64,000 bases of DNA from Octopus bimaculoides (lineage: Eukaryota), in NCBI RefSeq assembly GCF_001194135.2, contig NC_068985.1:31778658-31842657 (forward strand). The letters run 5' to 3'. A model generated the notes under the pieces. It saw only the letters and a list, made by a program, of their open reading frames with translations. It had not been told where the DNA came from and did not search any database. Made by a program: the position numbers and the translations under genes. Shown piece after piece: positions 4,488 to 61,257 of the stretch (its first letter is position 1; the number at the start of each line of letters is the position of its first letter).

Positions 4488-4493
4488 TTTATT
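4488..4493 (-). terminator. Candidate ZPR1 polyadenylation signal
   Basis: AATAAA on the minus strand about 210 nt after the ZPR1 stop codon. Confidence 0.5.
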
Positions 4494-26888: not shown

Positions 26889-27643
26889 TTTAACTCTCCA
26901 GCAATTTTTTTACTGAAAACCTACAAATAAATATTGTGAATTTATTAAAGAAAAATATAACATTCACTACTAATCAACAACATATTATCTCAATAATTTC
27001 ACCAGTAGACTATCTCAGATTACTTTCCACTTGGAACAATATTTAAGTTGTTAGGTGGGAAATTTTTTCTTTTGGTATAAGATTTGTTAAATAATATTAC
27101 TATACAATATAGTTAGTTATTCTCAAAATGATTCTAGCTTTCTATGCCAACCAGTTTATATTCTTGTACATTTACTTAGTGTTTCTTAGCATGAACAATG
27201 AAGTCTAAGCTTTGCTAATGGGGTCATAAAACTAAAACATGTCTGGAGTTGTCTCTTACTGAAATAAAATAATATTAGTCAATGATGAATTTAGTTTTTT
27301 TCCTATCTGCATAATTATATCTAGTTAAATACCATCCTAATTAAACAAGACAACTCTTAAATTTTTATTTAATTTAATGAAAATAGAATTTGTGCAATGC
27401 TATAGCAATTGAATGTAATTTTGGCAATACAGTGACAACTATGGGCATGTTAGTGTTTTATTAGACCTCATCTGTGAAGTATAGATTTTTGTGAATAAAC
27501 ACTTTATGGTGTGATCAATTTAAAAAGGGATAAGGGAAATATACCTTGGGACAAACTCTACATGAAAACCAAAATAATCAATGTTAACATAATCTAAAGT
27601 CAAGAAATGTTTAATCTTTTTCCTTATTAAGCATGCTAGGTAT

Positions 27644-27965
27644 AGATGTGGCTTCATGATAAGAAATTTGCTTCCCAACCACATGGTTCTGGATTCAGTC
27701 CAACTGCATGGCATCTTGGGCAAGTGTCTTCTACCACAGCTCTGAGCCAACCAAAATCTTGTGATTTGGTGGACAGAAACTGAAAGAAGCATATCGTGTA
27801 TACATATATTTATGTGTGTGTATTACTGTCTCCATCCCTTGGCATTACATGATAGTTGTAAACAAGTCACCATCATGCAAGTGGTGTCCTTCATTTCCAA
27901 CCTTCTCTGAAGACGTCTAGTCATGGGAAATATAACAATTTCCGTCTGACCCATGCGAGAAAGGA
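27644..27965 (+). mobile_element. SINE with family A head and tail type 2, degraded
   Basis: TGTGGCTTCATGATAAGAAATTTGCTTCCCAACCACATGGTTCTGGATTCAGTCC..GGCATCTTGGGCAAGTGTCTTCTAC followed by the tail-2 body. Confidence 0.6.
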
Positions 27966-29478
27966 AAACTTTACTATTTGAATTTCATGAAGGACATGTC
28001 CTAGTGTATTTTTCCTTCATCTCTATTTCAAGTTATCATGTATCATGTCCAATGGTGTTTCTATACTGCCAAAAATCACATTCACTCTCCATCACTGCAT
28101 TACTCAATTCTATTTCTCATAAAGTTTAAGTTTGGAGTTGTCTCCCCTGTCCATTTTGACCAAAATTGATCGTTAAGTTAATAGTTCTTTCTCCTTATTA
28201 AAATGTTTTGGTTCACTACATTAAGTTGTTAGCATTGACCTCATCTTCCTTTACTGACTATAACTTATACTTGCATCAAGCATAATGAAGCCTGCATCAC
28301 TCTTCCTATTCCATCACCCTTCTCCTAAATTCATCAATGGTTGAGGCACATCGGGGACTTGACCATGGTTTGAAAGGATGCCTACAGTTTATCTTTCCCT
28401 AGATCAGTTCTCAGATGATGACTTAACAGATAATGAGTTTCAGATAAACTTAGTAAGCTGTTATCTTGTTGGTTGTGTGACAACATATCCATGCCAGACA
28501 AAAGAACACTGATAAAAAGAATGAATGACATTAGATCACCAGTAACAAATTGCTTCATATTTTTAAGATGGATCTGTTATTTATTTTACCACACAAATTT
28601 CTATGGTGTGACACGACTAGCTGCATGTCACTGATTTTAATAAATTAAGAATTGGGGAAAATTTTTGTTATTTTATAAGAACAGAATTCAGTTTTCAAAA
28701 CAGGGAACTGCACAAATAAGTGGATTATTTCATCAATCAAGTTGGTAAAAACTTCAAAAAATTACATCAAGTCTTGAAACTGCATAATATCTAAAGTTAG
28801 CATTCTGGTGATGCATGAATAAGTAGACAACAGAAGAAATTATAACCATGTAACAAGTGTAATAAAATCAGAAGTAAAACAATATTTATCAACAATTCAG
28901 TCAAGAGCAGCAAATTCAAGGTACACCAAGATTTCTGATACACGAACAACTTGTTCTATTACTAGAAGTTATTTAATTTTCTAAATACAAAATTAATCTA
29001 AAGAATGAGAACAGAAGTATGGTAAATCAGTACTGAATCCTAAAACTATCGAGGAAACTAATATTCTCAGACTGTTGATATCTACACCGAGAGAAGAGGC
29101 TCTGGTTTGGATAATTCTAATACATTTTCATCTTTGGTTCTGAAGAAAATTTCTAAATTTTGGCAAATAGTGGTGACTGTTTATTTTTATGGGCCTTCAA
29201 AATTGCTCTTTATCTTTTCTATCAGTTGACAGCATTTCATACTCGGAAGGTAGGTACAATATTACCAACTGTGTACATTTTCCTTCAATAAAAGAAAAGA
29301 TGTACACACAAAAGTATTTGAAACTATTTGCTCATTAAAAAGTAATTTGTAACCTACTTTTTTTATCATGAGATTGTGAAAATGGCTTTCACAATGCACT
29401 AAACTACATTTTCAGTCAACAAATTATAATTGTCAGCTTCCTATTTCATTTGAATCAATGCAGCAAAAATCTTGTTAA

Positions 29479-29698
29479 CCCTTTCCTTACCAACCTGGCT
29501 GAAACCAGCTCTGGCTCTGAATACAAATGTCTTGTTTTCGTAAGTTTTGAATTAAAATCTTCCATCAAACGTAAGTTACAATTTATGTTCCTAACACTAG
29601 CTGAATGATAACTAAGTTATTTTACTAAATTCTTTGTTATATTTAAAGTAATTGAAAGAAACATAGAGCATCTCAAAATAAATACAGTAATGAAAGGG
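29479..29698. mobile_element. piggyBac-type MITE, second family
   Basis: TTAA|CCCTTTCCTTAC ... GTAATGAAAGGG|TTAA. TTAA at 29475-29478 and 29699-29702; interior unrelated to the 45988 family. Confidence 0.7.
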
Positions 29699-31629
29699 TT
29701 AAAGAATATCATAATGAGTAAGTATGCCTCGAGTGCAAGATACTGTTAGCCTTAGCTTTTATTCCCTACACCATACTGTTGATGCTTTTGAAGTAATTCA
29801 TATCCATCTGACAACTTTAAAGACATGAATTAGTGGACCTGTTAGCTGTAGATAGGAACATGATTTACAATACTTGTGAACTTTGTAGCTAGTTGATTCT
29901 CATAGCATTCTTCTAGGTCAACCATGCACAAAAATGCAGTTCAAGATATGGTTGGTTATGTGTAACCAACAGTTTATAAGATTGTTGAAACTACTTGTCT
30001 AAAACAATCACATACAAAGAATTTTTGTCCCATATATCAATGCTTGTGTAAGTGGAACAAAGTAACATCCTAAATGTGAGAGAACTGCAGTAGCAATTAT
30101 CACACTGGTAAGATCATATAATGAACTGGACTATGAGGATTTTATGTGAAGTATATCTTAAAATACAGAATTGTATTTTTGAGGTATTTCATGGTTATTA
30201 AGTCTCTAATAATATTCTTTTATCAGTGTCCTTGAGTAATGGTACTCTTTTGGTAATTAAATTCAGTCATATTTATTTACTCATAAACTACCTGAAAGGT
30301 ATAGTGACTGATGTGAAACTAAATAAATCAATAACATATTTCTAATATCATCACTTTTGGAACAATGTTGAAGAGGTGTTACTGTCACTTGAAATTGTTT
30401 TGATTATTTCATTTGAAGGATATAGTTTCATTCATTCTTTTGTTGGCACACTTTTGTCAAGTGCACACTACTTGGTCAAATGGAGGTCACCATAAAGTTG
30501 GTGATAGAACACTTTCTACATTCAGCTAATGCTGAGACCAACCAAAGAATTTAAGTGAAGGGATTCATTCTGGAAGTCTAAGTCTCATATTCATATAGTG
30601 TATGGAATTGATTGATAGAAGTGAAAATGGAATATCATAACATTTCCAAGTGCAAGTGATTTGGCTTCAGCAGAAAAGTAAGACAAGTTTTGTTGAAGAT
30701 ACAACAACTATATTTCTATCCTTATTACATATACTAACTTCTTAGCAAGCACCAGTCTCCAGATTAGATGGAATTAAGATAGTATAATGTTCATGGCTCA
30801 CTGAAACATTAACTTACACTTCTTCATTTGATAATAATCAGTGGAAAGGCACTAAAGTTTTTCAGTCTAATGCTCTTCCAAACATGTTACATAAAGACTT
30901 CTCTGAACAATATGAAGATTCCAGATTGGGTTTTAGGCACCTTTTCAGATGTTGAGAAAACAGAAATACAGAAAAGTAGGTGACTTGTGAGATTTGGCTG
31001 TTATTATTAGCAGATTGATTGTTCACATTTTCTTGTTGGCTTGTGCTGGATTTTGTTTTATGGATACCAGTCCTGCAATGATTATATTTAGTTGATAAGT
31101 TTAAGAGTTTTATTCATGTACATAATGTCTGCTACCTCTGTATCCTGTATGCGCATGTAAGGATAGAGAAAATGTGTCTGGTTGTTGAGAAATGTTTTAT
31201 AAAGCATATACATTGTGTTAGAAATGTACCTGGTTGTGGAGAAAAATTAGAATGGTTCAGTAACTTTTGAGTCAATATCTGTTTCTGTTTTGCCATCCTT
31301 CAAAAGTAAGTATTTATTCTAAATATAAATGCATGTCATTTATTGTTATATCCAGTTTAGATTTGTCAAAGAACAAACCCTGTCACATACTTCCTGTTTT
31401 CAACTATTGGAGCACTATGTATAATTGTTTTTACAACCATGTATAATGTATGTATAAATAATTATTCATATTTACAATGTATGTATAAATATTTCTGATC
31501 AACCGACGGTTAGCAAATCTTTCCAAAATCTCCAAAGTACCCGAAATACCAACTGACTGGGACAAGTTATTCAAAGTTCACTTTTCAGCCTAGATCTCTG
31601 CCTTGATCAACAATTCTAAATTTCTGCTG

Positions 31630-32336
31630 TGCGCTGACAACCCTGGGGGTGGGGAGGGGACTTTCGGAAAATTCACAAGATCTGATTTTTCTGCCATAAC
31701 TTCGGGTAAAATGGATATATATTGATTTTTTTTTTTACAAAATCCCACATTTTTGGTTATGGAGGATCCGATTCTGAAAAAAATTTGCTTGTAAAATTTC
31801 AATTTTTCAACAAGGAAAATATATATATATATANNNNNNNNNNNNNNNNNNNNNNNNNNNNNNNNNNNNNNNNNNNNNNNNNNNNNNNNNNNNNNNNNNN
31901 NNNNNNNNNNNNNNNNNNNNNNNNNNNNNNNNNNNNNNNNNNNNNNNNNNTTTTTTTTTTTTTTTTTTTTGCGAAATACGTAGAAAAATACGAAGATTAC
32001 GATTCTGAAAAAAATTTGCTTGTAAAATTTCAATTTTTCAACAAGGAAAATATATATATATATATATATATATATACACTCAGGCCTTCAAGCAGGCTAT
32101 CCACATGCTAGAAATAACAGCCAAATCTCACAAAACTGCGATAACTTAATGAAATTTTGAGAATGAGATTTTTGGAAATTTTTTTTCAGAATTGGATCCT
32201 CTATAATCAAAAACGTGGGGTTCCATAAAAAAAAAATCAATATATATCCATTTTACCCGAATTTATGACGGAAAAATCGGATCTTGTGAATTTTCCGAAA
32301 GTCCCATCCCCACCACCCCAGAGTCGTCAGCGAGCA
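31630..32336. mobile_element. Fold-back/MITE element with ~155-bp terminal inverted repeats
   Basis: 31630-31783 is the reverse complement, with scattered mismatches, of 32179-32336. The ORF track shows EKSDLVNFPKVPSPPP on both strands. The interior contains an N gap. Confidence 0.85.
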
Positions 32337-32492
32337 TTATTTTTTTCATATTCGTTTTCTACACACTTGTTAACACCCACCAGGCTGGTTATTTATTTAT
32401 TTTTTTGTTCCCGGGTGAGGATCTTTATATTGACCTTTTCTTTTCCGTTTTCTGAGTGCTGTTCAAATTAAAATGAAAGTAGGTTTCCTTAC

Positions 32493-32530
32493 TTTTCTAC
32501 AAGTGCTAGCTACTTCCGCGGGTGCTTCTC
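32493..32530 (-). promoter_or_regulatory. Probable ZPR1 TSS region and short non-coding first exon
   Basis: The first coding exon starts with a splice acceptor (CT at 26921-26922 on plus) 32 nt before the ATG and has an in-frame upstream stop, so an upstream exon is required. Here a CpG-containing patch has an ETS-type CGGAAGT (minus 32518-32512) followed by donor GTAAGG (32492-32487). Confidence 0.5.
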
Positions 32531-32664
32531 AAGCTCAAATTAAATTATTTCTATTTCTTTACACATCTGCCAGTGATCACCAAGAGAAAGTATTTTTCCG
32601 CGAAAAATAAATAAATAAAATGCACATGCTTCTGGGTTTGGTTCTTGTATTTCACGTAAACTTC

Positions 32665-32803
32665 GGTAATTTTTCAGATTAACACCCGCACGATCTTCAC
32701 TAGGGTGTTAGGGTTAGGGTTTTAGGGTCAGGGTTCGGGACGGAGTAACCCTAACCCTAACACTCTAGTGAAAATCGTGCCGGTGTTAATCTGAAAATTT
32801 ACC
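32665..32803. repeat. Hairpin-forming inverted repeat with telomere-type TTAGGG/CCCTAA repeats at its centre
   Basis: Left arm TTTTCAGATTAACACCCGCACGATCTTCACTAGGGTGTTAGGGTTAGGGTT pairs with right arm AACCCTAACCCTAACACTCTAGTGAAAATCGTGCCGGTGTTAATCTGAAAA (3 mismatches over ~50 bp). Confidence 0.85.
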
Positions 32804-33489
32804 TAAACTTCTTTGTACACACCATATTTTCTAGAAAATACGCCATGCTTCCCTCATTTCACGTAATTTCTATTATTCTATTTCGTTTAAAGATTTACTC
32901 CGCTGCCACCAAACAAATACCAATTTTCAGAAGAATTGTCGAGTAATCTAAAATAATATTGTTTAAAACCATTTTACTTTCTTAAATTTAATGCAATAAG
33001 CTAAAATACAAATGTATTTAAACGAATACTGAAGGGTGTAATGAAATTGATATTTCTGGAAAATTTGAAAAGAAAAAAAAATTATTTTCATAAGCTAAAA
33101 AAAGGTCACTTAAAAAGATATGAAAAATAGACTATTATAAAAGTAAAAATTCTTACTTTAAATATCAATAAATAAAAATTTAATTACTTACTAGCCACAA
33201 TCAACAGTATTTTAAAACTGTTATTAACATGTTCGTAAGTAACGGTGTTTAGTTAGAAATGAAACTGTAGAATTTACTGTCAGTTATCGGCCTTTGGAGA
33301 TAAGCTCAGCTGCATATTTTTAACTTACGCCTCAACATTTCACATTTTTAATAGATTCAATGTCTTAATAACCAAGGCACTACTGGAGTTATATTTTAAA
33401 GAATATATGAAAGTTCTCGGATCTATTTTAAAACGGGGGCGCCAGTTTTCATTTATGTTTTATGTAGTGTTTTTGGTACGGAAAGACTT

Positions 33490-33960
33490 TCAAACTTCGT
33501 ATACTTATCTATTTTGTGTTATAGAACAGAAAAAAAATTTTGTATTCGAATTTATTTCATGTAAAAAAATTGTCTTATTTCGATAATTTCTACTAATCAC
33601 TGACGTCTATTCAGTTGAAAACAGTTAGCGCTGTAACGGTGTATATCGTATTAATCCCCTAACCCTAACTAGACTGTTAACCGTAACCGTAAAACTAACC
33701 GTAACCGTAAAACTAACCCTAACTCTAAAATCCGAACTCTAAAATTGTTACACGCACAGATACGCACAGCGTAATTTATTATATAAGCAATATATGCGTA
33801 TAAATTACGATTAAACCGGATGAAATATGTCACAGGGAATAATATTTTTTATGACCGCCCAGCAGTAACTCTATTCAGCTGAATAGACGTCAGTGATTGG
33901 TTGAAATTACAGAAATACGACAACTAAGAGTAAAAGATGTTTTATATGACACATTCTACC
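33490..33960. mobile_element. Inverted-repeat element enclosing TAACCC/TAACCG arrays
   Basis: Core arms 33584-33618 and 33874-33909 (about 35 bp, 3 mismatches) with more degenerate extension outward. Interior has CCCTAACCCTAA and (TAACCG)2 AAAAC repeats at 33655-33730. Confidence 0.65.
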
Positions 33961-34965
33961 AGTGTTCCAAGTTTCAAAGTTCTCTCTTGTTTGAAGATAA
34001 CGCCAATAAAATCGAACATTTTCAGATAATATAGACCAGTTATGAGCAACATGCGGCCAGTGGGAGTTTGTGAATGACACGCCTAACAAAAAAATTACCT
34101 TTACTTTTTTAATAGTGTGGACTGCCTGATGGTGAGGCACGTGTCGTGCGACCCGCTTCTCATAAAAAGTTGTCCATACCCGGATAGACAATGCAAATTG
34201 GAGTGAGTTTGATCTCAACTACTAAATAGTGCAAGCGATAAACATGTGTCCGTTTTATTCATACTTAGTGAAAGATATTCCTCTTTAGCAATGAAAATAC
34301 AGATAGATAGATAGATAGATAAATAATATAGTGGTGCTGATATTAACAATATGAGTGAAGGAAATACTTCACGAGAGCATATGAAGTATAACTATTGTAG
34401 GCTTTTGTATATGTGACTATACTGAGTTAAAACACTGTTCAACTGAGGTTATTTTTTAAAGAGACCCCTCAGGTGTAACATTAATAAAGAAAAGCAAGGG
34501 AGGTAACAAAGTATGTCCAGGTCTTTCACCAGCAGACTGCAATAACCATTCCATTCTGCATTATCGTGTTCCAAAAAAGTTTGATCAATTAGTCATATTG
34601 TAGTTATCTCCTTTGTTATTTGAGACCGGATTTTACTGACAAATGCTCTTCCTGTCGCCAAACTTTAAATGTTTTTCAAGTAAATGATTTTATTCCACAG
34701 GTCTTTGAAAGCAGTCAGTAGCTATACTGTCAAAAGAGACTGTCAACATAAGCGCCACTTTACTCAATATATGTGGAATTTAAACATTCACACCCACATA
34801 TGACGAGTTTCTTGCCAAGTCCATTCTACCCACTTCCCTCGCCTGGCATTTGTCAACCCAGGGCTATAGCAGAACAAACTTACTTCAATGTGTCATGTGG
34901 TAAAAATTGAAGCTAAAATTACTTGGTTGCGAAGCAAACTTCTTAGCTATATAGCCCTGCACCTA

Positions 34966-36010
34966 TCATCATCATCATCATCATCGTTTAACGTCCGCTT
35001 TCCATGCTAGCATGGGTTGGACGATTTGACTGAGGACTGGTGCAACCGGATGGCTACACCAGGCTCCAATCTAATTTGGCAGAGTTTCTACAGCTGGATG
35101 CCCTTCCGAACGCCAACCACTCAGAGAGTGTAGTGGGTGCTTTTACGTGTCACCCGCACGAAAACGGCCACGCTCGAAATGGTGTCTTTTATGTGCCACC
35201 CGCACAAGAGCCAGTCCAGGGGCACTGGCAACGATCTCGCTCGAAAACCCTACAAGGCCAGTCAGGCGGTACTGGCAACGGTCACGCNNNNNNNNNNNNN
35301 NNNNNNNNNNNNNNNNNNNNNNNNNNNNNNNNNNNNNNNNNNNNNNNNNNNNNNNNNNNNNNNNNNNNNNNNNNNNNNNNNNNNNNNNNNNNNNNNNNNN
35401 NNNNNNNNNNNNNNNNNNNNNNNNNNNNNNNNNNNNNNNNNNNNNNNNNNNNNNNNNNNNNNNNNNNNNNNNNNNNNNNNNNNNNNNNNNNNNNNNNNNN
35501 NNNNNNNNNNNNNNNNNNNNNNNNNNNNNNNNNNNNNNNNNNNNNNNNNNNNNNNNNNNNNNNNNNNNNNNNNNNNNNNNNNNNNNNNNNNNNNNNNNNN
35601 NNNNNNNNNNNNNNNNNNNNNNNNNNNNNNNNNNNNNNNNNNNNNNNNNNNNNNNNNNNNNNNNNNNNNNNNNNNNNNNNNNNNNNNNNNNNNNNNNNNN
35701 NNNNNNNNNNNNNNNNNNNNNNNNNNNNNNNNNNNNNNNNNNNNNNNNNNNNNNNNNNNNNNNNNNNNNNNNNNNNNNNNNNNNNNNNNNNNNNNNNNNN
35801 NNNNNNNNNNNNNNNNNNNNNNNNNNNNNNNNNNNNNNNNNNNNNNNNNNNNNNNNNNNNNNNNNNNNNNNNNNNNNNNNNNNNNNNNNNNNNNNNNNNN
35901 NNNNNNNNNAACTACCTCTAGTTTTTCTCCCTGGAATGAGATACAAGTTGTTTCCTGTTTGTTTACAGTGTTTATTGCACCTGAACATCTGCCACATACA
36001 AAGACTAACT
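34966..36010 (-). mobile_element. 5'-truncated RTE LINE (tail, gap, ORF piece)
   Basis: Young tail 34966-35287, N gap, then an ORF piece 35910-36010 homologous to 18140-18240 (..[20 protein letters not shown]). Confidence 0.75.
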
Positions 36011-36032
36011 TTGTATATATATATATATATAT

Positions 36033-36416
36033 ACTCTTTTACTTGTTTCAGTCTTTTGACTTTGGCCATGCTGGAGCACCGCCTTTAGTCAAGCAAATCG
36101 ACCCCAGGACTTATTCTTTGTAAGCCTAGTACTTATTCTACCGGTCTCTTTTGCCGAACCACTAAGTTACGGGGACGTAAACACACCACCATCGGTTGTC
36201 AAGCGATGTTGGGGGGACAAACACATACACACACACATATACACATGTATATGATGGGCTTCTTTTCAGTTTCCGTCTACCAAATCCACTCACAAGGCTT
36301 TGGTCGGCCCGAGGCTATAGTAGAAGACACTTGCCCAAGATGCCACGCAGTGGGACTGAACCCGGAACCATGTGGTTTGTAAGCAAGCTACTTATCACAC
36401 AGCCACTCCTACGCCT
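36033..36416 (-). mobile_element. tRNA-head SINE (family A, tail type 1), complete
   Basis: Gap-free reverse copy, from tail CTCTTTTACTTGTTTCAGTC to head CAGCCACTCCTACGCCT. Confidence 0.85.
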
Positions 36417-39029
36417 ATATATATATATATATACTATCTGAAATGTATACTATTACGTATCCATCATGGCTGATCTTACCCATCAGTTTTGCACAAGGAA
36501 TACAATGGAGTGTTAGGTAAGAACCTGTAAAGACCATGCGATCAGGAGAGGTGATGAGGAATGGCCCCTTAGTACATCGCACGGTCGATACAAATAAAAA
36601 TATGAAAAGAGGATAAATGCTGTATAAGTGCCAGAAGGAAAAGAGAGACACACCCGGTAGAAAGTTTAAGAGAAGATTTTATTTCTATGTTAACTTGTGT
36701 GTCTGTGTGTGCGTCATACAAACATAATAGACAAGCCGTCATGTATACAACGTGTGTGTGCAAAACAGATGTATGCATGTGTGATATGTACAGAGCATAG
36801 AAAGAGTCTATAATATGACGTTAGAAGAAAGTCAAGACACAAGGATGATAAATGCCAGTTCATAGTCAAGATACTCTGTAGTTGAAGTGCTATATCAAGA
36901 AGTTGAGGCGGCAATGCAGAGCCAGGGAGAGGCACATGTACTATAAATCATCCTGTGTGATGTTCTCAATTATTCAAGTTGAATCCTACAAAATATTTTG
37001 CAATTATACAGTAATACCTCACTTTATGAGAACCCTCTTTACAAGACACTGGGCTTATGAGTTTTGTTTTATAATAAATATAAAAAGGTTAAACAGCCAT
37101 CTTGTGTGTGTGTGGTAACACTGGTTCTGATGCGTCTACACTGTGATCGAGTAAAATGATGGCATAAAGTTTCATTGCTACTTTGGGAAATTATTGCTCT
37201 ACGTTACAAGCTTTTGCTTTACAAGCGATCTCCAGGAACAAATTAACTCGTCTATTAAGACATTTCTGTATTTATCATTAACATGGACAATGTATGGATA
37301 CCAAGTGTATCAAATGCTAATAGACTTAGAATGATTAACAGTAAATATATTAGGAAAAATTACTTTTCAGCTTTGACATGGTTGTGGTGAGGATATGAAG
37401 CCCACTGAAGATGGTACTTCATGCAGATGGTGCCTACTTAAATGTACCAAAAGAATTTGTCGTAAGAAATTACCATTGCAAATAGACACATTGCCTCAAA
37501 GAAAACTAGGGAGTAGGGAAGAATGAGTAATTTTTGATTGCTCATCATTTTCTTTCTATCTGTTTGAAATTAGTACATTGCAAGCATAACATCATCATTT
37601 TGCTCTGTTCCATCATCCTTGTAAGTAAAATTGGTCAGTATAGTTATTGCTGAGGTTGAGAGAGTTTGAAACATAGTCAGGTGACAAGTACTTCTTTTTC
37701 AAGAAATGTTTCCTCAACTTTGACCCAATTGTAATTGTGGTTACTAATAAAATATCTGAACAATTTTTAGTGTTTAACAATCAATATTCTTTTCTCTATT
37801 GGATTTCAGGTAAATTTTTTCCCCCCAACACTAATGTCTAATTTGATCATTTTCAATCTTCAGAAAATGATGTCTAATGCGGGGCACAACGAGTAATGAC
37901 TAATTTCAATAATTTCTTCTCCTTAATTGCATAGTGTGTAAATACATCAAGAAGTAAGCCACTCCAAATTTGTCTTTTATATGCTCAAGGAGAACAGCGA
38001 TAATTTTCTGAAATAGAGTTCAGATTATGTTATAATACTTTTAATGCATTTAGGGAAGGTCATTTGCTGAGGTGATATAGTTTTTGTAAGGTAGTGAACA
38101 TTTGTAAAAAATACTTTTTGTCACAAAGTCAAAAATGCAGTAAAAACACTTCGTATCCCCCGCCAACACACACACTCAAACAGAACTGAGGTAATTTCTT
38201 AAAATAGTGTTCTGAATATGTTAAAGTGTTTTTGATATTTTTAGAGGTCATTTGCTTAGTTTTTGTAAAGTAGTGAAGATTTGTAAAAAAAAAAAAATTT
38301 TTCCTCGGTCAAAAATGCAGTAAATATTACTCATTGTGCCCCATCCCACCCCCTATATTTTATGGAAGTCATCTATCATGAATGAATTAGTGGGCGTATA
38401 AGACAGCTACCGTGAAGTTAAGCTGTTGAGTACTGACCAGAAAAAAAGCTACTTGCCGTGATATATGCGCTCAGCACTGGAAAAGAAGACACGCTGTTTT
38501 TCTTCACAGCATATTTATTTCTAGTTTGCTAATTAAAAAATAATCATACTTTGAAAGAAGTAAACAGGATAAACAAGAAGGGAATTTATACGCATCCGCC
38601 AAATCTCTTAGAAATAGTAGCCAACTTTCCTTAAAAATCACATCATTAATCTAAAAAAAGAAAGACCATGCGGATGTAATTTACTCCTAAATACAGATTC
38701 TATAATAGGCAGAATGGTTAATGTTATAACGCTTGTGATCACAGTGCTGCCTGGGGATAAACAATAACGAAAAACACCCTACATATTGTCCTATACACAT
38801 TGTACCTGATCAGGATTGCCTGGGTTAAATAACACCTTTTTGTCGAAATACATTTTAAGTGAAGTTTACTCGTTGTTTACAATTCGTATGAGCTGATGAC
38901 AATCAAATGACTTAGTCGGAAACAATTAGATTAGTTTTATATTATTGTGTGCAATACATTTGTCTTCCGTTAAATCAGAGCTTGTTGCACGCAACTGGGT
39001 TAGCTCCTGCTGATTAATAGAACTTTACA

Positions 39030-39100
39030 GTATTTAAGCGGAAGTTAATTACTGCGCATGTACGAACACATGGCTACACTCCTCTGCTCCACGTGAAGCG
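39030..39100 (+). promoter_or_regulatory. Putative TOMM40 core promoter
   Basis: Locally CpG-rich patch 85-150 nt upstream of the ATG with GCGGAAGT (ETS/GABP-type, 39038-39045), TGCGCATG (NRF1-type partial site, 39053-39060), ACATGGC (YY1-type, 39068-39074) and CACGTG (E-box, 39090-39095). Confidence 0.6.
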
Positions 39101-39182
39101 GGGCTGGAGAAGATTTAGGGGCTGTTCAATAATATAACTGTATATAAATTTTAATAGCAGTTTTCAACATATTTAGGACACT

Positions 39183-42100
39183 ATGGGTAATGTAAATGCA
39201 GCATCACAACCTCCATCAACGGCGGTACCACCGTTATTAACACCACCGCCACCTGCACCACCTAAAGAACCGGCACAAACTTCTGGGCTTTCTGGAGGTC
39301 CCCCATCAGAAATTCCCCTAACAAATTTTCCTGACAATCCTGGAACTTTTGAAGATCTCCATAAAAAATGCAAAGGTAAAAGAATTGTAAACGAAACCCG
39401 TTGGTTTTCTTGGGTTTGATTTCTATGACCGTCTCACCTTGGATATGACCCGGTGTAATTCGACCCTGTTCTTATATTAACTTGGTATTCACTCTCTAAA
39501 ACATCCTTCAGTATATCATTCACGTTCTGTAAATTGATTAATATTATTGGCTTCGTGTTAAATACTAGAATTATTTTAGTATTACCTTTTGTTTTTCATG
39601 CTAACGCCTATATAATTACTGTAGTTTATTACTATATGTAAATGTAGTGTTCTGACCTATAAACTTTTTCTATAAGGTAAAATGTAAACGGGCTTCTCCA
39701 GTTCATTGTAAAAATAGCAACTTTTAGGTTACATGCTTCTTGTTAGCTCTCGATAATTTTGTGTTTCGCTCGGTGATATTACCATCGTTAATTCAAATAA
39801 ATTTATTTTTTATGATATATTACTATTTAGTTGCACAATCCTGTTGTTTCTCTCCCTACCACTCACTTTATTTTCTCGACCTTCTTCAATGATCCCAAGT
39901 TTCGTATTTTTTAGTGCAAGAAAAAAAATCGATATTTTGTTATTTTAGCTTACTTTCTGTTATATAATTTATACATTAAAATGTGTAGTCTTTCAAAATA
40001 CCGAAAGATTTGGGGGAGAACAAATGATTTGACACTTTAAAATATTGTAGCCTTCTGCATAATGTAATTATCATCTGTTGCTCTCTTTAAAGGTAATTTG
40101 TATATATTAGTCTCAACAAAATATATATTGCCGAAGAATTATTTCTTATGAATTCCAATTAAAAAAATAAAACGTGGGATAATTTTATTGTCAAACCGTC
40201 GTTTATGGAATAAGTACTTAATTATATATTAATGCTATATATGGTGCTTATTTATACATTACGTCTCTGGATATATTTCCTGCATTTAATATAAGTTCAC
40301 CGGCTAAACATTACACTATCTTCCATTCCCAAATATTAAAGTTTAACACTTTCCGTGTAGTATAGCTGACTTTAGAATACATAATTGATTTGTTCTCTGA
40401 GAAACTTTTTTATTTCGAAGATACTCTGAATTGATTTTCCATCGGTGAATTCGAGCTCGCACATCAAGTTAATGAAATACTCCTTAGTTATGCAATATAT
40501 ATGTTGTTCTTACGGAAATGAGATATGTGTCAACATTTGGGTGGACTGGGTCAATCAAGAAATACTAACTCTAATGGGATGATAAACGTAGACTTGACGG
40601 TCACTAGGCCTATACCTAAACGACTTAGCTGCAATTCCTAGCACCTTATTGATATCAATCAACATCGTCTTTCGTCTTGTAACAAATTGAGCCCAGATAT
40701 TCTAGACTACACAGAAAGATACATCTTGCTCTTGAACAAGATATGTGGATAAGTTCGCTCCTGAAACGTGCACCAGTATTTAGTTAAGCGTGAAAGATTT
40801 TTTTAAAACTGGAATGGAAGTTAATAACTGGTGTTTTTACAATGGGTGTCTACTTGGCACAGTGAAGGTGGAAAATGTAGACNNNNNNNNNNNNNNNNNN
40901 NNNNNNNNNNNNNNNNNNNNNNNNNNNNNNNNNNNNNNNNNNNNNNNNNNNNNNNNNNNNNNNNNNNNNNNNNNNNNNNNNNNNNNNNNNNNNNNNNNNN
41001 NNNNNNNNNNNNNNNNNTAAAGAGAGCTATAATACAATTTTAGAGGCAACGCAAAATAAATAAAACCTTTGGAAATGTGCTGTGCGTGAGAAAACCTGGC
41101 AAGCCAAGTAAGATCGTTGTCAGTGCCCCTGGACTGGCTCTTGTGCGGGTGGCACATGAGATGCACCATTTTGAGCGTGGCCGTTGCCAGTATCGCCTGA
41201 CTGGCCTTCGTGCAGGTGACACGTAAAAGCACCTACTACACTCTCTGAGTGGTTGGCGTTAGGAAGAGCATCCAGCTGTAGAAACTCTGCCAAATTTAGA
41301 TTGGAGCCTGGTGTTGCCATCCGGTTTCACCAGTCCTCAGTCAAATCGTCCAACCCATGCTAGCATGGAAAGCGGACGTTAAGCGATGATGATGATGATT
41401 TAGGGCTTACCCGTAATATAACTCTCAGATCCGTTTGTCATAATCCTCATATTTCATTCATTGTGCTAATGTCTAGCATAAATATTGAATATCATTGTGG
41501 TTTACTACTATATACTATCTAGCTATTAAAATAAAAGACAGACATAGATAAAATGAAGTTTATTGCACTAGACCAGTTCAGTCAGGACAGTACTACTTTC
41601 TGTAAGAAACAAGAGTATTTACCAATTTTTGTGGAAATCATTTGGCAACACTTGAGCAAAAGGCACAACACTGAATGTTGCGAAGTTAGTCACTAATCTC
41701 CATTAAACTGGTGCATTTTAGTTCTGTTTCTTTCTAACTCTGATTTTTTAATGTTTTTATCCTGTCACCATTTAACAAGGTAAAATTGATATACGACCAC
41801 CAAGAATTATATATATGATGGCAATTAGAGTATGGGTGCAACTTTGAGATAAATATCATGGGGTGGTTTTTTGTCATTTATAAACAATGTTTAGTCTCAG
41901 TAATAATATAAGCTGTATTCAAATGTCAGTCTTTGGAAATTTGCCTCACTAAATTGAAATAAAATTAAGATTGATATTATAGAAATTAATATATGTATGT
42001 TTAGCAGCTTGCTAGGGATAAGCAGTTTTGGTTAGTAGGTGAATTCATTTAAGATAAACAGATGATGTTGATGTTACATCACATGGAAGTTTCATTGGGT

Positions 42101-45100
42101 TATAGTGATTAAAAAAAAAAAAAAACTCAAGCGAAAGTCAGACATGGTAAAGAATTTATGAAAAAATTTTGAATTTAAGAAGTTTCCTCTGATCAGGGAG
42201 AAAGTGTAATTTGTATGTTACTGTTTTCATTAAGAAATCAGTGCTCATTGAATTTAGCTTTATCTAAGTGAAATACCTACTATTAAAAGCTCACATCCAT
42301 TTTGTTGCTGTAAGGAGAGGTGATGTTCATTTATCACTTACAAGGCATGCATGTTTGTTTCAGATACGTCTCGCTGAATAAAGTGCCAATCATAAAATGT
42401 TTTTTAACATATTTTTTGTTTTTAAGAATTACTTTTGAAAAATAAAGTACAAATTATTAAATACAATTTTTGGCAGGACCTTCCTGCACATTTATATATT
42501 TAAAAAAATTTATTTGCTTGCACACAATTTTATGTGCATAGAAGTTATTTTTGTAAGGTACTATAAATGCTTTGTTTTTGTTATGCAGTTGCAATTAATC
42601 TATGATGATGCTACAGAAATAAGTTAGATGAGCATAATATGAAGTTGGCAACCATTTCCCTTGACTATATTTGTTCTCTGTAAATAACAGATGATTATTG
42701 TAGTATTTTTTGGTACTGTAGTTGCTGGCTTGTTTTTGTGAGTTGTGTTTATAATAATGAGTTTTTGGAAAAGGATATATGTCACATTGATCAGTATTTA
42801 TTGGAATGTATTTTTATGGACCTTTGAAAATGAAAGATAAATCAAGCTTCATGAAATTTGAAGTAAAAATGTGAGAGATCAAGCTAAATATCACAAGGTA
42901 TTTAGTTTATGGTTTTTAGTACACTGTTGCCTTAATAATAATAATTTGTTACATTCAATTAGAAAGGGTAATTTATTTCAGGTGATGTCTTGACTAAATT
43001 ACTTGTGTAATTAATGTATGTTTCCTCTCGATACTAATCCTTCAGTTGAATTAACATATTAAAATGTATTCCTTTTGGGCATTTTAAAGGTAATTGTATT
43101 AGGATTAGAATCTATAAGTTCTTGGAGAGGGGGCGATTTTTTTTTTTTATCCATCCATATGATCACTGTAAGTAATCAAGTTCGTAAAGTTTCTTTCTCA
43201 TTTTAATTTGTGAAAGATCAGCCATTAGTTAACAGTTTATGACCCATTATTGTTTTCTTGCATTAGTATATGTTTGTTCATTAGTACATAAATGTGTTCT
43301 TATACTTCAGATGTATTTCCTCAAGTGTTCGAAGGTGGGAAGCTGATTATTTCCAAAGGTTTAAGCAGTCATTTTCAAATCAGCCATACTTTGTCTATGA
43401 GTACATTCCAGTCAACTGGATATCGGTTTGGAGGAACATATGTTGGTACCAAAATGTACAGTGCTCAAGAGGTAAAGAGGTTACATCTATGAAGATGCTT
43501 TCTTTTCATTGTATGTATTGTATCCTAAAGATACAGTGTAAGGAGTTACATTGATGTAATATTACTACTTTACACATCAGACTGGAGATTTTGATTCAGT
43601 TTTGTTTAAGTTGCTTTAGATGGCAATTTATCTTCTTAACATTAAACCAGCCAAATATGGGGGACCATAACACAATGCTTTTTGTTCACTGACCATGAAT
43701 GGCTACATTTCCATGTTAACTTTCATAGCAGAAGACTTTTATAAATTCGTCCCTTTTGTCTTAGATTGGTTGTTTTTATGTGAATACATCTACATTTAAC
43801 ACCAGATGTTATGAATATAAATTTAAGGCATGAAACGTTTATATTCCTTTTGATTATGTTTGAACATACAAGTAATCTGTGCTAAGGTTTGTGTTGCTAT
43901 GATTTTATAGCTAGACTTTTAATCCTCCTGATATCAAAATATATCTTCCTTGGTGGAAACAGTATGATTGCTATTCCCTCTTATCATACATTTGTTTTTC
44001 CATTGCATCTTGTTAGTGCGGGGTCAATACTCTGCATGTGTACATATGTCTATATATATAAAATGTTACCCAGACTTAAGTTTTTTTTTTCGGTGAGATG
44101 CATAAGACAAAATAGTAATTTTTTTTTTAATGGAAGCATTGTATCATTTAAAACTTATTTTCAGCCTTTATAAAAGTTAAGATGGACATTTGATTCAGTG
44201 TTCTTGTTTCCTTTTATAGGCTTACCCTGTTCTTATTGGTGATACTGATGCTTCTGGTAATATGAATGCAAACATTATACATCAATTTACTGAAAGACTT
44301 CGAGGGAAATTTGTTGCCCAAGTAAGTGTCAGTTCTCAATATTTATTGTTTTAATGAAGAGTAATAGAGGTGTGCTTTCGAGGGTTTTGTTGTGCTGAAA
44401 TAAATAAATGAAATGATGCTGCTTTCTTTATTTAGATCCAGAACAGCAAGTGGCTGGCCACACAATGTGCTGTGGATTATAAAGGCAATAATTTCACTGG
44501 TTCTTGTACTCTTGGAAATATAGATATTGTTAATGAATCTGGTAAGTAACATATTTATTTTTCGTTTCTATAGATTTATGAACAATAAACAATTTTAACA
44601 AAATTATTGAAGCCAAATTTGATCATCAAGATAAGATTTTGATCTTCCGTAACTTTTCTAGTGGCTTTCTTTTCTATTGTTTTCAAATCTATCAGCTATA
44701 TTATATAGAAGTAGATTGATTTAATTTTTCAAAATATTTCATTTGGAGCTTTAGTATATAAAAACTAACTCTTATCTAATAAATGAAAGCTTTTTAGATA
44801 CAGTTGTCTTATAAATTATCCAAGGAAAAGAAACTAAAAGCCAAAATCTACAATACATTCAAAATCAGTTAGTCATAGCATGGAAGGTAGTGGCATCCAG
44901 TGATACTAATGCTAATTGTTGCTACCCTTTAGGATACATTTGAGTTGTCAGCTACCAATTTTTTGTGCTTTGTTTCATCAGAGTTTGTAGATTTGTACTT
45001 GATAAACGTTTTCACTTTTTCATTTGGATGTATCATGACAAGTTTCAAATTGGAATTGAGATATCTTTTGTTATAATTCCATTTCTGTACCCACAGATTA

Positions 45101-48100
45101 GACAAGTTTTCATTTATATTGTGTAGTTTGTGGAAATGCAATAAACTAGTAATTGTTCCAGCAAATCAGTCACTATATACAGATACAAAAAATAAGGCTG
45201 GAAGAATTTAATGTATAATCATTCACCAAAGTTTTATGCTCTACTCTTCATCATATCTTTATGTCAATAACAATCAAAGCATCAAGTGTGGAAGGCCTGT
45301 AGATAAGAGAGAAAAAAATAAGTTGTGCATGCTCCATTTGATGTGCTACTTTAACTTACACAGCAGGGCACAAATGAAATGAGAAAAAGATTATGCGTTA
45401 AAAACATTGACTGATAGTTGCTTTGCTATGAATTATATTTAATGAATGAAAGTTTTGTGTACTTGACTGTGGCAAAATAAGACCAAAGAAAACACAGGAT
45501 AAAATGATGAGATCTGATTCAGAAACATTAGGCATCACAGATGATATAATCCAAGTTTGAAACAAATTGTGACAGCCATCTTGCAAAACTGTTAAATCTA
45601 TTTTACCATGACAAAATGAGTGTCAAAATGGTGATGATAAATATATTATACACAGTAGTTTGAAAATTGTAGATATAGTACTTGCAAAGAGTCTTGGCAG
45701 TTTACATGGTGTAGCAAGATAGTTATTATATTAGACTATGTATAAATGAAATGTATTTTATAGCTGTTGTGTCTTTTTTTTCTACCTATCACTTTGTATA
45801 CGCATTTCTAATTGTTTAAAATTGTTTTACAGGTATTGCAGTTGCTCAGTATTTACAGAAAGTTAGCTCTTCATTAATGCTTGGTGCTGAGCTATTATAT
45901 CAGTATGGTAACACCGTCCCTGGGAATGAAATGGCTATACTTTCATTAGCTGGGAAATATTCAGGTAACAACAATAGTAAACTTTAACCCTTTAGCATTC
46001 AGATTCCTTTGTCAAATGTAGTGTTTATTTATTCACAATGTTTTGAATTAATCATCTACTATCTCATAGCTTTGAGATTTCAATGATGTGATTATTTTCA
46101 GAATGACATTGTAAGGTGGGTGTGAGAGGCCAGATCTGTCCTGTTTCAGTATAAAGCAAGTAGAATATTTTGGCTAGATATGTCCAGCTTAAATGCTAAA
46201 GGGTTAATATTCTCAGTATTATTTTCATTATTTACTTTGTTGTTTTTAGAATATAGCCTAATTAATTGTGTTTTGTGATGCTGGAGAAGACAATTTTTTT
46301 TCTAATATTAGTGCATGAATGCTATTTCTCTACCATCCAATTACTGTTTGTTAGATATATTCTATTTACTCATTATCACCATTTAGTTTCTCCTGCAATA
46401 ATGTGTCTAGTATATTTGGTTTGGTGACCACTCAGTATTAACCAAATTGAGGAACTGGAAAATAATTGGGTGACAGAGTAATGGTAACTTCAAATTAGGT
46501 GATATTAATTTGTTAAAAAATAAGGCAAGGATTCTTTCTAGGTACAGTTTGTCTTTCATCCTATCAAATAGGTATCAGTCATTTACTGGAATTGATTCAT
46601 TCAATTAACCATACCATTTTTCCTACAAATTGCTGCCATTCTGCTAATTTTGTTATTTTTTTGGCATAATTTACCTTTATCACAAGGATGCTGTATTCAC
46701 CATGTAACTTAAACTATATATGTCTCGAGCGTGAAAGATATACTCTGCTTAAACAAGAACTAATTCTCTCTCTCTCTAGATAAATTGAACCGGTTAGATT
46801 TAATAAGTATAACTGTTTTGGAACACAAGATGTTGCAAAATATAGAAGATATAAGAGGTTAGACTGACTATACATATTTTCCTCTTGAAATTCTATCCAA
46901 CTCATTTCTTCTCATTTTATTTCAGGAGATAAATGGCAGCTTTCTGCTAACTGTAGTCCTGCTGCTGGAGGTATTCACTTAGGCTTTCATCAGGAGGTCA
47001 TGGAAAACCTTGAAATAGCTGTTGAAATGGAATCAAGTTTACAAGAAAGTGCTACAACAGTAGGATACCAATATGAAATTCCGAATGCTGGAATGACATT
47101 TAGGGGTAAGTTTGAATTTAAATTTTTTAGTCAGAAGGTTGACTTGTTCACTAAAAATTAAAAAGAGGTTGTGCGATTATTCTAATTCGTTTTTATCTAG
47201 CAATATTTCGTGTCTGCTTGAATTAGAAAAGGTTGTTTTCTCCATCACACTCTTTTGTCCTTTAGGTCATCACTCTCTTTTATCCAACCTCTTGATCACA
47301 ATTGCCATAAAAGATTGGAGATGATGTAGAGAGCACTATCTAGTCTTGTAGATACAGCAACCTCTCTAATACTCCTACTATAATAAAATGCATCCTATAC
47401 ATGTGAATGAATAGAGACAATGTAATGTAGAGGAGACTGTTTAGTATCATAACATGCAACCGATACATTAGGAAGGGCATCCAGAAATAAAAGACATTCC
47501 AAAAACGGACTGTAGGGACAAGACATGCTGTACAGCCCATACTGGCATGGAAAGTAGACACAGAATGTTTTAGAATAGCTTTTCTGTAGCTATTCCTTAC
47601 TATGATTTAATCTAACTTACTGTATTTTGTGTTTTATGTGGCCTGTTTCTGATTTAATTTACCAACAATTCATCATATTTTTGTTTGTCTTTAACTTTAC
47701 ATCTTCTAATGTAAATACATTTATTGCATCTACATTAACTAATATCTCTTGTAAATGGCTATTTTATCAGCTCGCCTGCTTTCAAGTAATTTCAGATTCA
47801 TTTGAATCAAATCAATAATACTCATTTGACTATTCTTTTTCTAATTTCTAATGTATGTATCAACTCTAATAATGTCATTCATTTCTGTGCTCTTCAAAAT
47901 TGCAAAAATTCTATTACCTTCTACTCTTGATGCCATACTCGTTTTACTATCATGACTTCATGACTAGCCTGAAATCCAATTTCCCAACACTGACAATTTC
48001 AGCTGCATCTTGGTCAATCTCTGTTGTAATTTTCTTTCACTTTTGTTTTGAATAGATATGTTAATCATATTAGCACACAATGCTGAATTAGTGTTGGTTT

Positions 48101-49145
48101 TATAAATGAGCTAGGTTCATTACAACATAATAAGACAAGCAGAGATGCATATGTGTTGCTAGTAATATCTCACTGTTGTACTTAGAACAGAAGACTTTGT
48201 GTAACCATTTCTAAGAATGTTTTCTTCAGTTTCTATAAAAAATACACAAGAAGTCTCCAAACCTGTAGCCTAAATTAACAATAGATCAGGACACACTGCA
48301 GACTGAGGGAGAAACCAAATTGATCTCAAATTCCACTCCACAGGTAGACAGGAAGGATAGTGGTCATTATCATCATCATCATCGTTTAACGTCCGTTTTC
48401 CATGCCAGCATGGGTTGGACGGTTCGACTGGGGTCTGGGAAGCCAGGAGGCTGCACCAAGCTCCAGTCTGATCTGACAGTGTTTCTACAGCTGGATGCCC
48501 TTCTTAACACCAACCACTCCGTGAGTGTAGTGGGTGCTTTTTATGTGCCACCGGCACAGGGGCCAGAGGTGGCTGGCAATGGCCACGATCGGTTGGTGCT
48601 TTTTACATGCCACTGACACGGAAGCCAGTCCAGGTGGCGCTGGCATTGGCCACATTCAGATGGTGCTTTTTATGTGCCACCAGCACAGGTTTCACAACTA
48701 CAATTTCCATTTGATTTTCATTTTGATGTTGATGTATGGCTAGAATAACTTTGCATAATGATCTCAGAGCTCAAACAACAGACTAATTCTAGGTCTCACT
48801 TTATAACACACATCCTCCTCACATCTGCATTATGAGAAATGTGTCCTCTTCATTTTTGCAACTATAATTGGCATCAAAAGTACTTCTAATTCTGGGTCTC
48901 TTCCCTCTTGGTTATATCTTAAATGATAGCCATAGATTTACAGAAAATGTATTGATGAAATAAACTATTACTTACTAATATATTTTATACCCTTTTCTTT
49001 TCCAGGACAACTGGATACCAACTGGTGTGTAGGGGCAATGTTGGAGAAGAAACTGCTGCCATTTCCATTTACCTTTGCTTTGAGTGGATATGCTAATCAC
49101 ACTAAAGCACAATACCGATTTGGTGTTGGTCTTATTGTAGGTTAA
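39183..49145 (+). CDS. TOMM40: Mitochondrial import receptor subunit TOM40, 7 coding exons, 337 aa
   Basis: Exons: 39183-39375, 43311-43471, 44220-44321, 44436-44541, 45833-45964, 46926-47105, 49006-49145; total 1014 nt, all GT-AG, phases consistent. Translation MGNVNAASQPP..(Pro-rich)..NPGTFEDLHKKCKDVFPQVFEGGKLIISKGLSSHFQISHTLSM..YRFGGTYVG..AYPVLIGDTDASGNMNANIIHQ..DYKG..LGNIDIVNESGIAVAQYLQ..LGAELLYQ..GYQYEIP..FRGQLDTNWCVGAMLEKKLLPFPFTFALSG..HTKAQYRFGVGLIVG*. Confidence 0.97.
41110..41399 (+). mobile_element. RTE 3' tail copy (young) in TOMM40 intron 1
   Basis: Near-identical to 3570-3867, ends in (GAT)n. Confidence 0.8.
45988..46203 (+). mobile_element. piggyBac-type MITE in TOMM40 intron 5
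   Basis: TTAA (45984-45987) |CCCTTTAGCATT ... AATGCTAAAGGG| TTAA (46204-46207): perfect 12-bp TIR with TTAA target duplication. Confidence 0.8.
48365..48690 (-). mobile_element. RTE 3' tail copy in TOMM40 intron 6
   Basis: (CAT)n CGTTTAACGTCCGTTTTCCATGCCAGCATGGGTTGGACGG...CAGCTGGATGCCCTTC. Confidence 0.75.
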
Positions 49146-51315: not shown

Positions 51316-52160
51316 CGGTGACGGAGAACTACACTAGTGGTGTGCAGCTTGACGGAGAAAGCCTGTGCAATCTGAGATACACCAATGACACAACCCTCAT
51401 AAGTAACAGCAAGGACGAATTGCTGCATATGATACACAAAGTGAAAGACATGAGTGCACAGAGTGACCTATTCCTGAATGTAAAGATGACAAAGATCTTG
51501 GTGGTGGATAAGTACAGGACAGACCAAGGTGACTTCACCGTAGACGGAGAGATGATTCGGGAAGTGGATGATTTTGTGTACTTGGGATCCACAATCAGCA
51601 CCAGTGGAACAAGCACACCAGAGATATGGAGAAGGCTCGCGATAGCGAGGCAAGCGGTACAAGATATGGAGAACATCTGGAAGAGTCGTGGCGTGTCAAT
51701 GCTGCTGAAGATAAGGCTACTTCGGGCTGTCACTTTCTCTATTGCAGCGTATGGCTGCAAGTCGTTGACAATGTTGAAGGCAGACGAGAAAAGAGTGAAC
51801 GCTTTTGAAATGTGGTGTTACCGCAGAATCCTTAGTGTCATGGACGGAGAGAAGGACAAACAACTGTGTACTAGAAAAGCTCGGTTGCAAGATGACACTT
51901 CGGCGAAACATCATGAAGTGGAAGCTACGGTTCTTTGGCCACGTCATGCGCTAGGATGGACTTGAGCAAACGATCATAACTGGCAAGGTGAACGGCAGAC
52001 GTAAAAGGGGCAGTCCACCCACTTCTTGGCTGAAAGACATCGCAGCCACAGGATTGTCTTTATTCTCAGCTGTCCTTGGGGTAGAAAACAGGAGAAGGTG
52101 GCAAGATATCATGATGACCACAGCATCGCATAATGTGACACCTGACTAGAGAGAAGAAGC
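51316..52160 (+). mobile_element. 5'-truncated RTE/BovB-clade LINE, RT C-terminal half; a different family from the PHD-RTE
   Basis: ORF 51318-51965: NLRYTND (degenerate YADD), LNVKMTKIL, EVDDFVYLGS, EIWRRLAIAR, KIRLLRAVTFSIAAYGC, NAFEMWCYRRIL. Higher GC than flanks. Confidence 0.88.
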
Positions 52161-60724: not shown

Positions 60725-61257
60725 CTTTTTAGAAATTGACATTTGGTGCATGAGGGAATTTGATGCTGCTGCGCTCATTTGCCCTTCTTGCTGTGAAGTT
60801 GGTTCATCTGGGACACTTGACAGTAAGAAGTCCAGTTTCATTTTGAAAACACCTATATCCACCCCATGCAGGTCTCTCAGGTCCTTCGGGAGGATATTGA
60901 AGAGCTGTGGTCCCTTAAAGCCCAGGCTGTTGCAATATCTTGTCCTATATCTTGATGGCAAATTTACAGTCCTTGGCAATTCCAGTGGCGCCCTGTTCTA
61001 GTAATTGTGTAACTCTCGATGCCAAAGTTTGGGACATGTCCCTACAGTATCTTGCAGATGTAGATTATGGCATATCTTTCTCACTTATGCTGTAATGAAT
61101 AGAGTCTCAATCTCTTGAGTCTCTCCCAGTAACTTATATGCTGCATATAGGCTATCTTTTTCGTGTATTTTTTGTTGGATTGCCTCAAGTTCTGCAATTA
61201 ATTTGACACTGGTTCTTGACCGTAGCTGGGAGCAATAGTCAAAGTGGCTTAGGACAA
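60725..61257 (-). mobile_element. CR1-like LINE 3' coding fragment
   Basis: Minus-strand peptides LSHFDYCSQL...IAELEAIQ and NSLGFKGPQLFNILPKDLR..FKMKLD.LL..VPDEP resemble the CR1-group ORF2 C-terminus. Confidence 0.65.

Follow-up and report, generated by a model that had tools for sequence, protein, structure and literature searches.

Human apolipoprotein genes are found at three locations (PMC6854765). The human gene order includes NECTIN2-TOMM40-APOE, and ZPR1 and APOA5 form one locus at 11q23.3 (PMC10827653). In the mouse, Tomm40l and Apoa2 lie 7 kb apart (PMC2577893), and linkage of an apolipoprotein gene, lal1, to tom40 is known from the lamprey (PMC7431520). The literature treats the regions 1q23-24, 11q23 and 19q13 as paralogons (Zucchetti et al. 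2009, as cited in PMC4536121). ZPR1, TOMM40 and TOMM40L are known above all as the genes beside the human clusters of lipid and Alzheimer risk (APOA5/A1, APOE and APOA2). The subject of this report is a stretch of 64,000 nucleotides from Octopus bimaculoides (contig NC_068985.1, positions 31,778,658 to 31,842,657), called the window below, in which ZPR1 and TOMM40 are neighbours. An earlier reading of its letters, the original prediction, held that the two genes lie head to head with only repeats between them and that they may be the ancestral bilaterian pair beside which the exchangeable apolipoprotein gene arose. Is the adjacency a coincidence of a single genome? Or has the pair been inherited from an ancestor shared with other animals? 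Our comparison shows that the divergent pair is inherited, that the ancestor shared by molluscs, annelids and nemerteans already had it, and that it was later lost on several occasions.

The window consists of 64 kb of AT-rich animal DNA and includes ten assembly gaps (runs of N), four of them within ZPR1 introns and two in the spacer between the genes; none touches an exon. The genes were first placed by tblastn with human ZPR1 and TOMM40 queries, used as a lead only, which put ZPR1 exons at approximately 4.7-26.9 kb on the minus strand and TOMM40 exons at 39.2-49.1 kb on the plus strand. The ZPR1 coding region (4700-26888, minus strand) has 14 coding exons, with the ATG at 26888, the last codon ending at 4703 and the stop codon at 4702-4700, and these exons exactly reproduce the 440 amino acids of the RefSeq O. 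bimaculoides protein (P0245) in spliced mapping. The protein contains two stretches each of PF03367 and PF22794 (Zn_ribbon_ZPR1 and jr-ZPR1; E 9e-51 and 2e-84 in Pfam), the duplicated zinc ribbon and jelly-roll module of the ZPR1 family, and its top database matches are Octopus and Argonauta ZPR1. The TOMM40 coding region (39183-49145, plus strand) has 7 exons, coding at 39183-49142 with the stop codon at 49143-49145. Its spliced mapping is also exact, and the assembled protein of 337 amino acids is identical to O. bimaculoides XP_014768426.1 (P0241). PF01459 (Porin_3) is covered from 1 to 271 of 271 (E 8e-65 in Pfam); this full-length domain, together with named top matches that are all TOM40 homologues, places the protein closer to TOM40 than to VDAC. 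ZPR1 on the minus strand and TOMM40 on the plus strand are therefore head to head, 12,294 bp from ATG to ATG, with a gene-free spacer at 26889-39182. The adjacency in the original prediction is borne out by the exact spliced mappings and by the lack of any protein-coding signal between the genes. In O. vulgaris, ZPR1 and the two TOMM40 isoforms carry consecutive protein accessions (CAI9722530, CAI9722531 and CAI9722532).

ZPR1 contains two U12-type introns. The first, an AT-AC intron at 16427-19669 on the minus strand, has the donor ATATCCTTT, splits the codon in ENP|HAP and carries a branch-like TCCTTAAT 12 nt ahead of the terminal AC. This donor is at the identical codon position in O. vulgaris, Aplysia and Gigantopelta, and in Lineus the exon reads through the site. 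The second, at 13255-13758 on the same strand, is of the GT-AG kind; its U12 donor reads GTATCCTTT, and ACCTTAAC lies close to its 3' end.

The cross-species test consisted of contig look-ups at the loci of homologues, and tblastn of the octopus proteins against all of these loci agreed with the gene calls. In Argonauta hians (locus L002), ZPR1 is on the minus strand at 1-6676 and TOMM40 on the plus strand from 10001, divergent and with no gene between them. The gastropod Gigantopelta aegis (CM027801.1) has the TOMM40 5' end at 46,966,238 on the minus strand and the ZPR1 5' end at 46,978,319 on the plus strand, a divergent pair 12.1 kb apart with no gene called between. The same arrangement, again with no intervening gene, is present in the annelid Owenia fusiformis (L007; ZPR1 at 222-7418 on the minus strand, TOMM40 from 10001 on the plus strand) and in the nemertean Lineus longissimus (L008; ZPR1 at 2354-8119 on the minus strand, TOMM40 from 10001 on the plus strand), in whose compact genomes the called gene ends are 2.6 kb and 1.9 kb apart, respectively. 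All six species with the pair have it in the head-to-head orientation. Adjacent orthologues with no intervening gene are thus present in the phyla Mollusca, Annelida and Nemertea, more than the two distant phyla that define an ancient microsyntenic pair. In a genome of approximately 3x10^4 genes, a given gene is the immediate neighbour of another with a chance of approximately 6x10^-5. Because the same arrangement recurs in four other lineages, chance is ruled out, and the concern in the original prediction that a single genome might show a coincidence is removed by the divergent pairs of Argonauta, Gigantopelta, Owenia and Lineus. Likewise, among the species compared, the pairs in these four do not fit a picture in which the genes are unlinked in other invertebrates, which that prediction had named as grounds for abandoning it. 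Since molluscs, an annelid and a nemertean share the same divergent pair, it is at least as old as their common ancestor. That ancestor dates from before about 530 million years ago.

The Argonauta ZPR1 model (464 amino acids, annotated 'partial') runs approximately 2.2 kb upstream of the start that aligns with Octopus, over L002 4504-6676, and this N-terminal extension looks like a prediction artefact. The conserved start found by tblastn is near 4504, which makes the distance from ATG to ATG in Argonauta approximately 5.5 kb rather than 3.3 kb.

With ten gaps in the window and two of them inside the spacer, the adjacency could in principle have been created by scaffolding that joined unrelated contigs across N. 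The first spacer gap, at 31834-31950, is bridged by the O. vulgaris ZPR1 locus (L001), in which window position 31786 corresponds to 5054 and window position 31951 to 4985. The second, 622 bases at 35288-35909, lies in repeat-rich DNA where SINE-like copies abut it on both sides (34924-35287 and 35910-36426). Its flanks are collinear with the O. sinensis TOMM40 locus (L009), which contains no N; window position 34815 corresponds to 3473 and window position 36936 to 7340. The O. sinensis locus in turn reaches into the sequence upstream of O. vulgaris ZPR1 (L001 1-1246 matches L009 4725-3478), and the composite O. vulgaris/O. sinensis spacer of approximately 15.3 kb has zero called genes. Because the gap flanks are collinear in gap-free relatives and the O. 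vulgaris accessions are consecutive, the adjacency is real and the gap hides repeat sequence at most. An assembly artefact was therefore tested as an explanation and rejected, on the collinearity of both gaps with the gap-free O. vulgaris and O. sinensis assemblies and on the identical pair in Argonauta; its probability is practically nil. A related doubt is whether a gene that has escaped annotation, for example an apolipoprotein-like one, lies between the pair or is concealed in the gap, given that 622 bases are unread and that short, fast-evolving helical proteins are difficult to detect. No spacer open reading frame (ORF) of at least 40 amino acids matches a Pfam family at E<=0.1. As tblastn queries, human APOA1, APOE and APOA2 have no match at E<0.1 in the window or in any fetched locus. 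Pfam searches of the larger flank ORFs return a weak RVT_1 match only, with no apolipoprotein family. No ORF with the amphipathic 11/22-mer repeats of the PF01442 type, the mark of an exchangeable apolipoprotein, is found near the pair. The only recognisable element in the O. sinensis equivalent of the gap is an RVT_1 reverse-transcriptase fragment, neither spacer gap is crossed by a reading frame, and the spacer lacks a called gene in all six species. A hidden gene is therefore very improbable, and the original prediction was right that no apolipoprotein-like ORF is visible in the interval.

The statement that only repeats separate the two genes proved too strong, although its core, that no gene lies between them, holds. 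A second copy inside the window exists for 1,934 of the 12,294 spacer bases (16%), and much of the remainder is single-copy DNA that can be aligned with O. sinensis. SINE-like elements with second copies in the window occupy 27637-27829, 34924-35287 and 35910-36426 of the spacer. One such family has copies at 3589-3867, 34924-35287, 41107-41399 and 48364-48686, and a second at 27637-27829, 36014-36426 and 57499-57906. The spacer also contains two palindromic MITE-like elements, at 32666-32803 and 33570-33923, whose arms or cores carry telomere-like TTAGGG/CCCTAA runs; inverted copies of the latter element were also found in the self-comparison of the window.

The interval in the original prediction begins at 32493. 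This is not the ZPR1 start codon, and the position instead matches the edge of a putative non-coding first exon at 32493-32560 on the minus strand, recognised by conservation only. Its donor is AAG|GTAAGG at 32493/32492, the minus strand reading ...TTGTAGAAAAG|GTAAGG, and a splice acceptor is present at approximately 26920, immediately upstream of the ZPR1 ATG. The exon and its donor are inside a block of approximately 150 bp that hardly varies among O. bimaculoides, O. vulgaris and O. sinensis, while the flanking DNA is 82-90% identical. A CGGAAGT motif occurs within this block, inside the putative exon. The putative exon sequence found no match in Argonauta at three or fewer mismatches. A non-coding ZPR1 first exon that ends at 32493 is thus plausible, with conservation within the genus Octopus as its support. 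On the TOMM40 side, approximately 75 bp of promoter-proximal sequence (39039-39113, plus strand; 70-144 bp upstream of the ATG) hardly differs between Octopus and Argonauta. This block contains CGGAAG, which is ETS/GABP-like, GCGCATG, which is NRF1-like, and CACGTG, an E-box. GCGCATG is also found within approximately 330 bp upstream of TOMM40 in Owenia, where it forms the palindrome GCGCATGCGC, and in Lineus. By motif match, the block would fit an NRF1-type promoter of a nuclear-encoded mitochondrial gene.

Why has the pair persisted? The most likely mechanism is a compact promoter region. Two constitutively expressed housekeeping genes may at first have formed a compact head-to-head unit whose promoters were shared or lay close together, in which a break between ZPR1 and TOMM40 would harm one of the genes, and the adjacency would be kept. 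The octopod spacer would later have been enlarged to 12-15 kb by SINE-, MITE- and LINE-type insertions that left the pair unbroken.

The neighbours of the pair bear on its relation to vertebrates. In Lineus, ZPR1 is flanked by a hormone-sensitive-lipase-like gene (HSL_N, LIPE-like; L008 1-89), and in Owenia, TOMM40 is flanked by Capicua (Cic; L007 23924-26119). The human counterparts, LIPE and CIC, are neighbours at 19q13.2, approximately 2.5 Mb from TOMM40. The spiralian block LIPE-like / ZPR1 / TOMM40 / CIC then maps to human 19q13.2, 11q23.3, 19q13.32 (with TOMM40L at 1q23.3) and 19q13.2, and so corresponds to human 19q13, with ZPR1 at 11q23.3 as the exception. The human locations given in the original prediction for the three apolipoprotein clusters agree with PMC6854765, and its view of these regions as duplicated paralogons agrees with PMC4536121. 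If the 11q23.3 and 19q13.32 clusters share one ancestral locus, ZPR1 and TOMM40 were close before duplication because they are the immediate neighbours of those clusters, and such closeness is what the spiralian arrangement predicts. In vertebrates, ZPR1 (11q23.3), TOMM40 (19q13.32) and TOMM40L (1q23.3) occupy separate regions of a single paralogous set, each directly beside apolipoprotein genes. On the simplest reading, the pair, or a tight linkage, would have existed before the vertebrate genome duplications and been followed by reciprocal loss. That the linkage survived to the pre-vertebrate ancestor and was resolved in this way seems to us slightly better than an even proposition.

Two further neighbours were seen. 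Lineus has a UBA52-like gene downstream of TOMM40. In Argonauta, TOMM40 is followed after 9.5 kb by a subtilisin/proprotein-convertase gene (Peptidase_S8 and P_proprotein; L002 32345-32866) on the other strand. Human PCSK7 is near the APOA1 cluster at 11q23.3. The window shows no counterpart of the Argonauta gene over the 15 kb that follow TOMM40.

Several observations weigh against an old and constrained pair that reaches back before the vertebrates. In Aplysia, ZPR1 and TOMM40 share one 274-kb scaffold but have the same orientation and are separated by 106 kb. In Patella caerulea they are on contigs of 78.4 and 65.6 Mb, and so on different chromosomes, and the pair is broken; in scallop they are on different scaffolds, as judged by scaffold sizes. 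Upstream of TOMM40, ORC4 is found in Priapulus and BBS2 in the tunicate Clavelina (one species each), with no ZPR1 within 10 kb. A strictly shared bidirectional promoter, in which transcription would start on both sides within about 1 kb, does not apply in Octopus if ZPR1 exon 1 is real, as this putative exon is approximately 6.5 kb from the TOMM40 promoter block and first exon; in Lineus and Owenia the distance between called gene ends is 1.9 and 2.6 kb. These losses (Patella, Aplysia, probably scallop, Priapulus and Clavelina), together with an Octopus spacer that tolerates many kb of transposon insertions, would be expected if the adjacency persisted by neutral inertia, the short spacer having simply escaped rearrangement in the absence of shared regulation. 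Such persistence is a serious alternative to promoter constraint, if a doubtful one. It does not readily explain why the pair was kept in four deeply separated lineages, cephalopods included, or why no gene was inserted between the two in any of the six species with the pair. Cephalopod gene order is otherwise strongly scrambled.

The depth of the pair raises a second difficulty. Every species with the pair is a mollusc, an annelid or a nemertean, which keeps a lophotrochozoan origin in play; the pair would then be a spiralian invention irrelevant to vertebrates, and its human apolipoprotein neighbours a matter of coincidence or of loose chromosome-scale linkage. Outside the spiralians the sample comprised one ecdysozoan (Priapulus) and one invertebrate deuterostome (Clavelina), each with 10-kb flanks and neither with the pair, so that neither of these species extends it to Ecdysozoa or Deuterostomia, and in this sample no deuterostome or cnidarian with the pair was found. 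Molluscs, annelids, arthropods and vertebrates took up the homologue lists, and the two least protostome-like representatives on a quick tree were a leafhopper and a tunicate clade, with a genome contig in Clavelina only. The microsynteny comparison proposed by the original prediction accordingly gave a divided answer, with the genes paired in a gastropod, an annelid and a nemertean, broken in Patella and absent near the TOMM40 of Priapulus and Clavelina, and the ancestral bilaterian pair that it envisaged is supported to the mollusc-annelid-nemertean depth but not by these last three species. However, Priapulus and the tunicate each provide a single sample, and tunicate genomes have undergone heavy rearrangement. 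The spiralian neighbours LIPE-like and CIC map to human 19q13.2, by TOMM40; that two of the six neighbours sampled should fall within about 1% of the genome has an estimated chance of roughly 2x10^-3. Human ZPR1 and TOMM40, moreover, each adjoin clusters thought to be paralogous, which implies close linkage before duplication. A purely spiralian invention is thus possible but on balance doubtful. Taken as a whole, the best explanation is a true inherited divergent pair, most likely of compact housekeeping origin, and we regard this account as probable, with the extension of the linkage to before the vertebrates at the lower odds given above.

Could the spacer also be where the exchangeable apolipoproteins arose? 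Human gene order suggests that the apolipoprotein gene may have arisen beside the pair. A more specific version would make the spacer the birth site, homologous across animals, of the vertebrate exchangeable apolipoproteins, with the order ZPR1 - proto-APO - TOMM40, and the APOA5/A4/C3/A1, APOE/C1/C4/C2 and APOA2 clusters as its remnants after reciprocal loss of ZPR1 and TOMM40 copies; this we propose tentatively, as somewhat short of an even prospect. As to the vertebrate link in general, the promoter side of human ZPR1 carries APOA5 and that of TOMM40L carries APOA2, both in the position of the invertebrate spacer. Human APOE, by contrast, is downstream of TOMM40 and off the spacer side, so that at least one rearrangement must be supposed. 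If the birth-site proposal is true, there is one precise locus to inspect in amphioxus and other invertebrates.

The remainder of the window contains few other recognisable features. At 266-1324 on the plus strand, with the last exon at approximately 403-630, is the 3' end of a zinc-dependent alcohol/sorbitol-dehydrogenase-like gene that is convergent with ZPR1. It is 96% identical to an O. vulgaris gene (in L001) annotated ADH_N/ADH_zinc_N; the short exon (approximately 403-630) alone has no Pfam match. Downstream of TOMM40 there are degenerate reverse-transcriptase fragments at 51300-51962 (plus strand) and 60722-61641 (minus strand), with a weak RVT_1 match (E 0.007).

The human loci ZPR1-APOA5-APOA4-APOC3-APOA1 (11q23.3), NECTIN2-TOMM40-APOE-APOC1 (19q13.32) and APOA2-TOMM40L (1q23.3) involve the same two gene families as the octopus pair, each adjoining an apolipoprotein cluster. 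In human, ZPR1 and TOMM40 are on different chromosomes, whereas in the octopus they are direct neighbours with no apolipoprotein-like gene. The apolipoprotein genes at 11q23.3 and 1q23.3 are on the side where the invertebrate has the partner gene. In the lamprey, the linkage lal1-tom40-bcl (Han et al. 2020, PMC7431520) shows TOMM40 already beside an exchangeable apolipoprotein gene in an early-branching vertebrate. The same study does not mention ZPR1, includes no invertebrate loci and explains the three human locations by genes 'moving' rather than by paralogon loss. The bands of the 1q23/11q23/19q13 paralogon (Zucchetti et al. 2009, as cited in PMC4536121) contain ZPR1, TOMM40 and TOMM40L. 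The evidence published for this paralogon concerns immune-receptor signalling subunits, and ZPR1 and TOMM40 serve as its anchors in no paper among the literature searched. A ZPR1-TOMM40 synteny or gene pair is unreported in the literature searched, where the two are co-mentioned as loci of genome-wide association studies or similar; a search there for TOMM40L as an ohnolog gave no match, and the supplements of Schmidbaur 2022 name neither ZPR1 nor TOMM40. Should these flanking genes descend from one divergent pair, all three apolipoprotein clusters would gain a common point of origin. The pair would then be a fixed landmark present in animals without apolipoproteins, and the origin of the apolipoproteins would become a question about one locus.

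The closest general parallel is with the ancient metazoan microsyntenic pairs (Irimia et al. 2012, PMC3514665), in which unrelated genes have likewise stayed adjacent across phyla for hundreds of millions of years, an effect attributed to cis-regulatory constraint. Those pairs typically combine a developmental gene with a bystander that holds its enhancers, whereas ZPR1 and TOMM40 are both housekeeping genes and lie head to head. As a conserved microsyntenic head-to-head pair, ZPR1-TOMM40 is an object of an ordinary kind, and its value is as a landmark. Independently of the apolipoproteins, it adds a well-documented housekeeping pair to the short list of adjacencies that have survived the reshuffling of cephalopod genomes.

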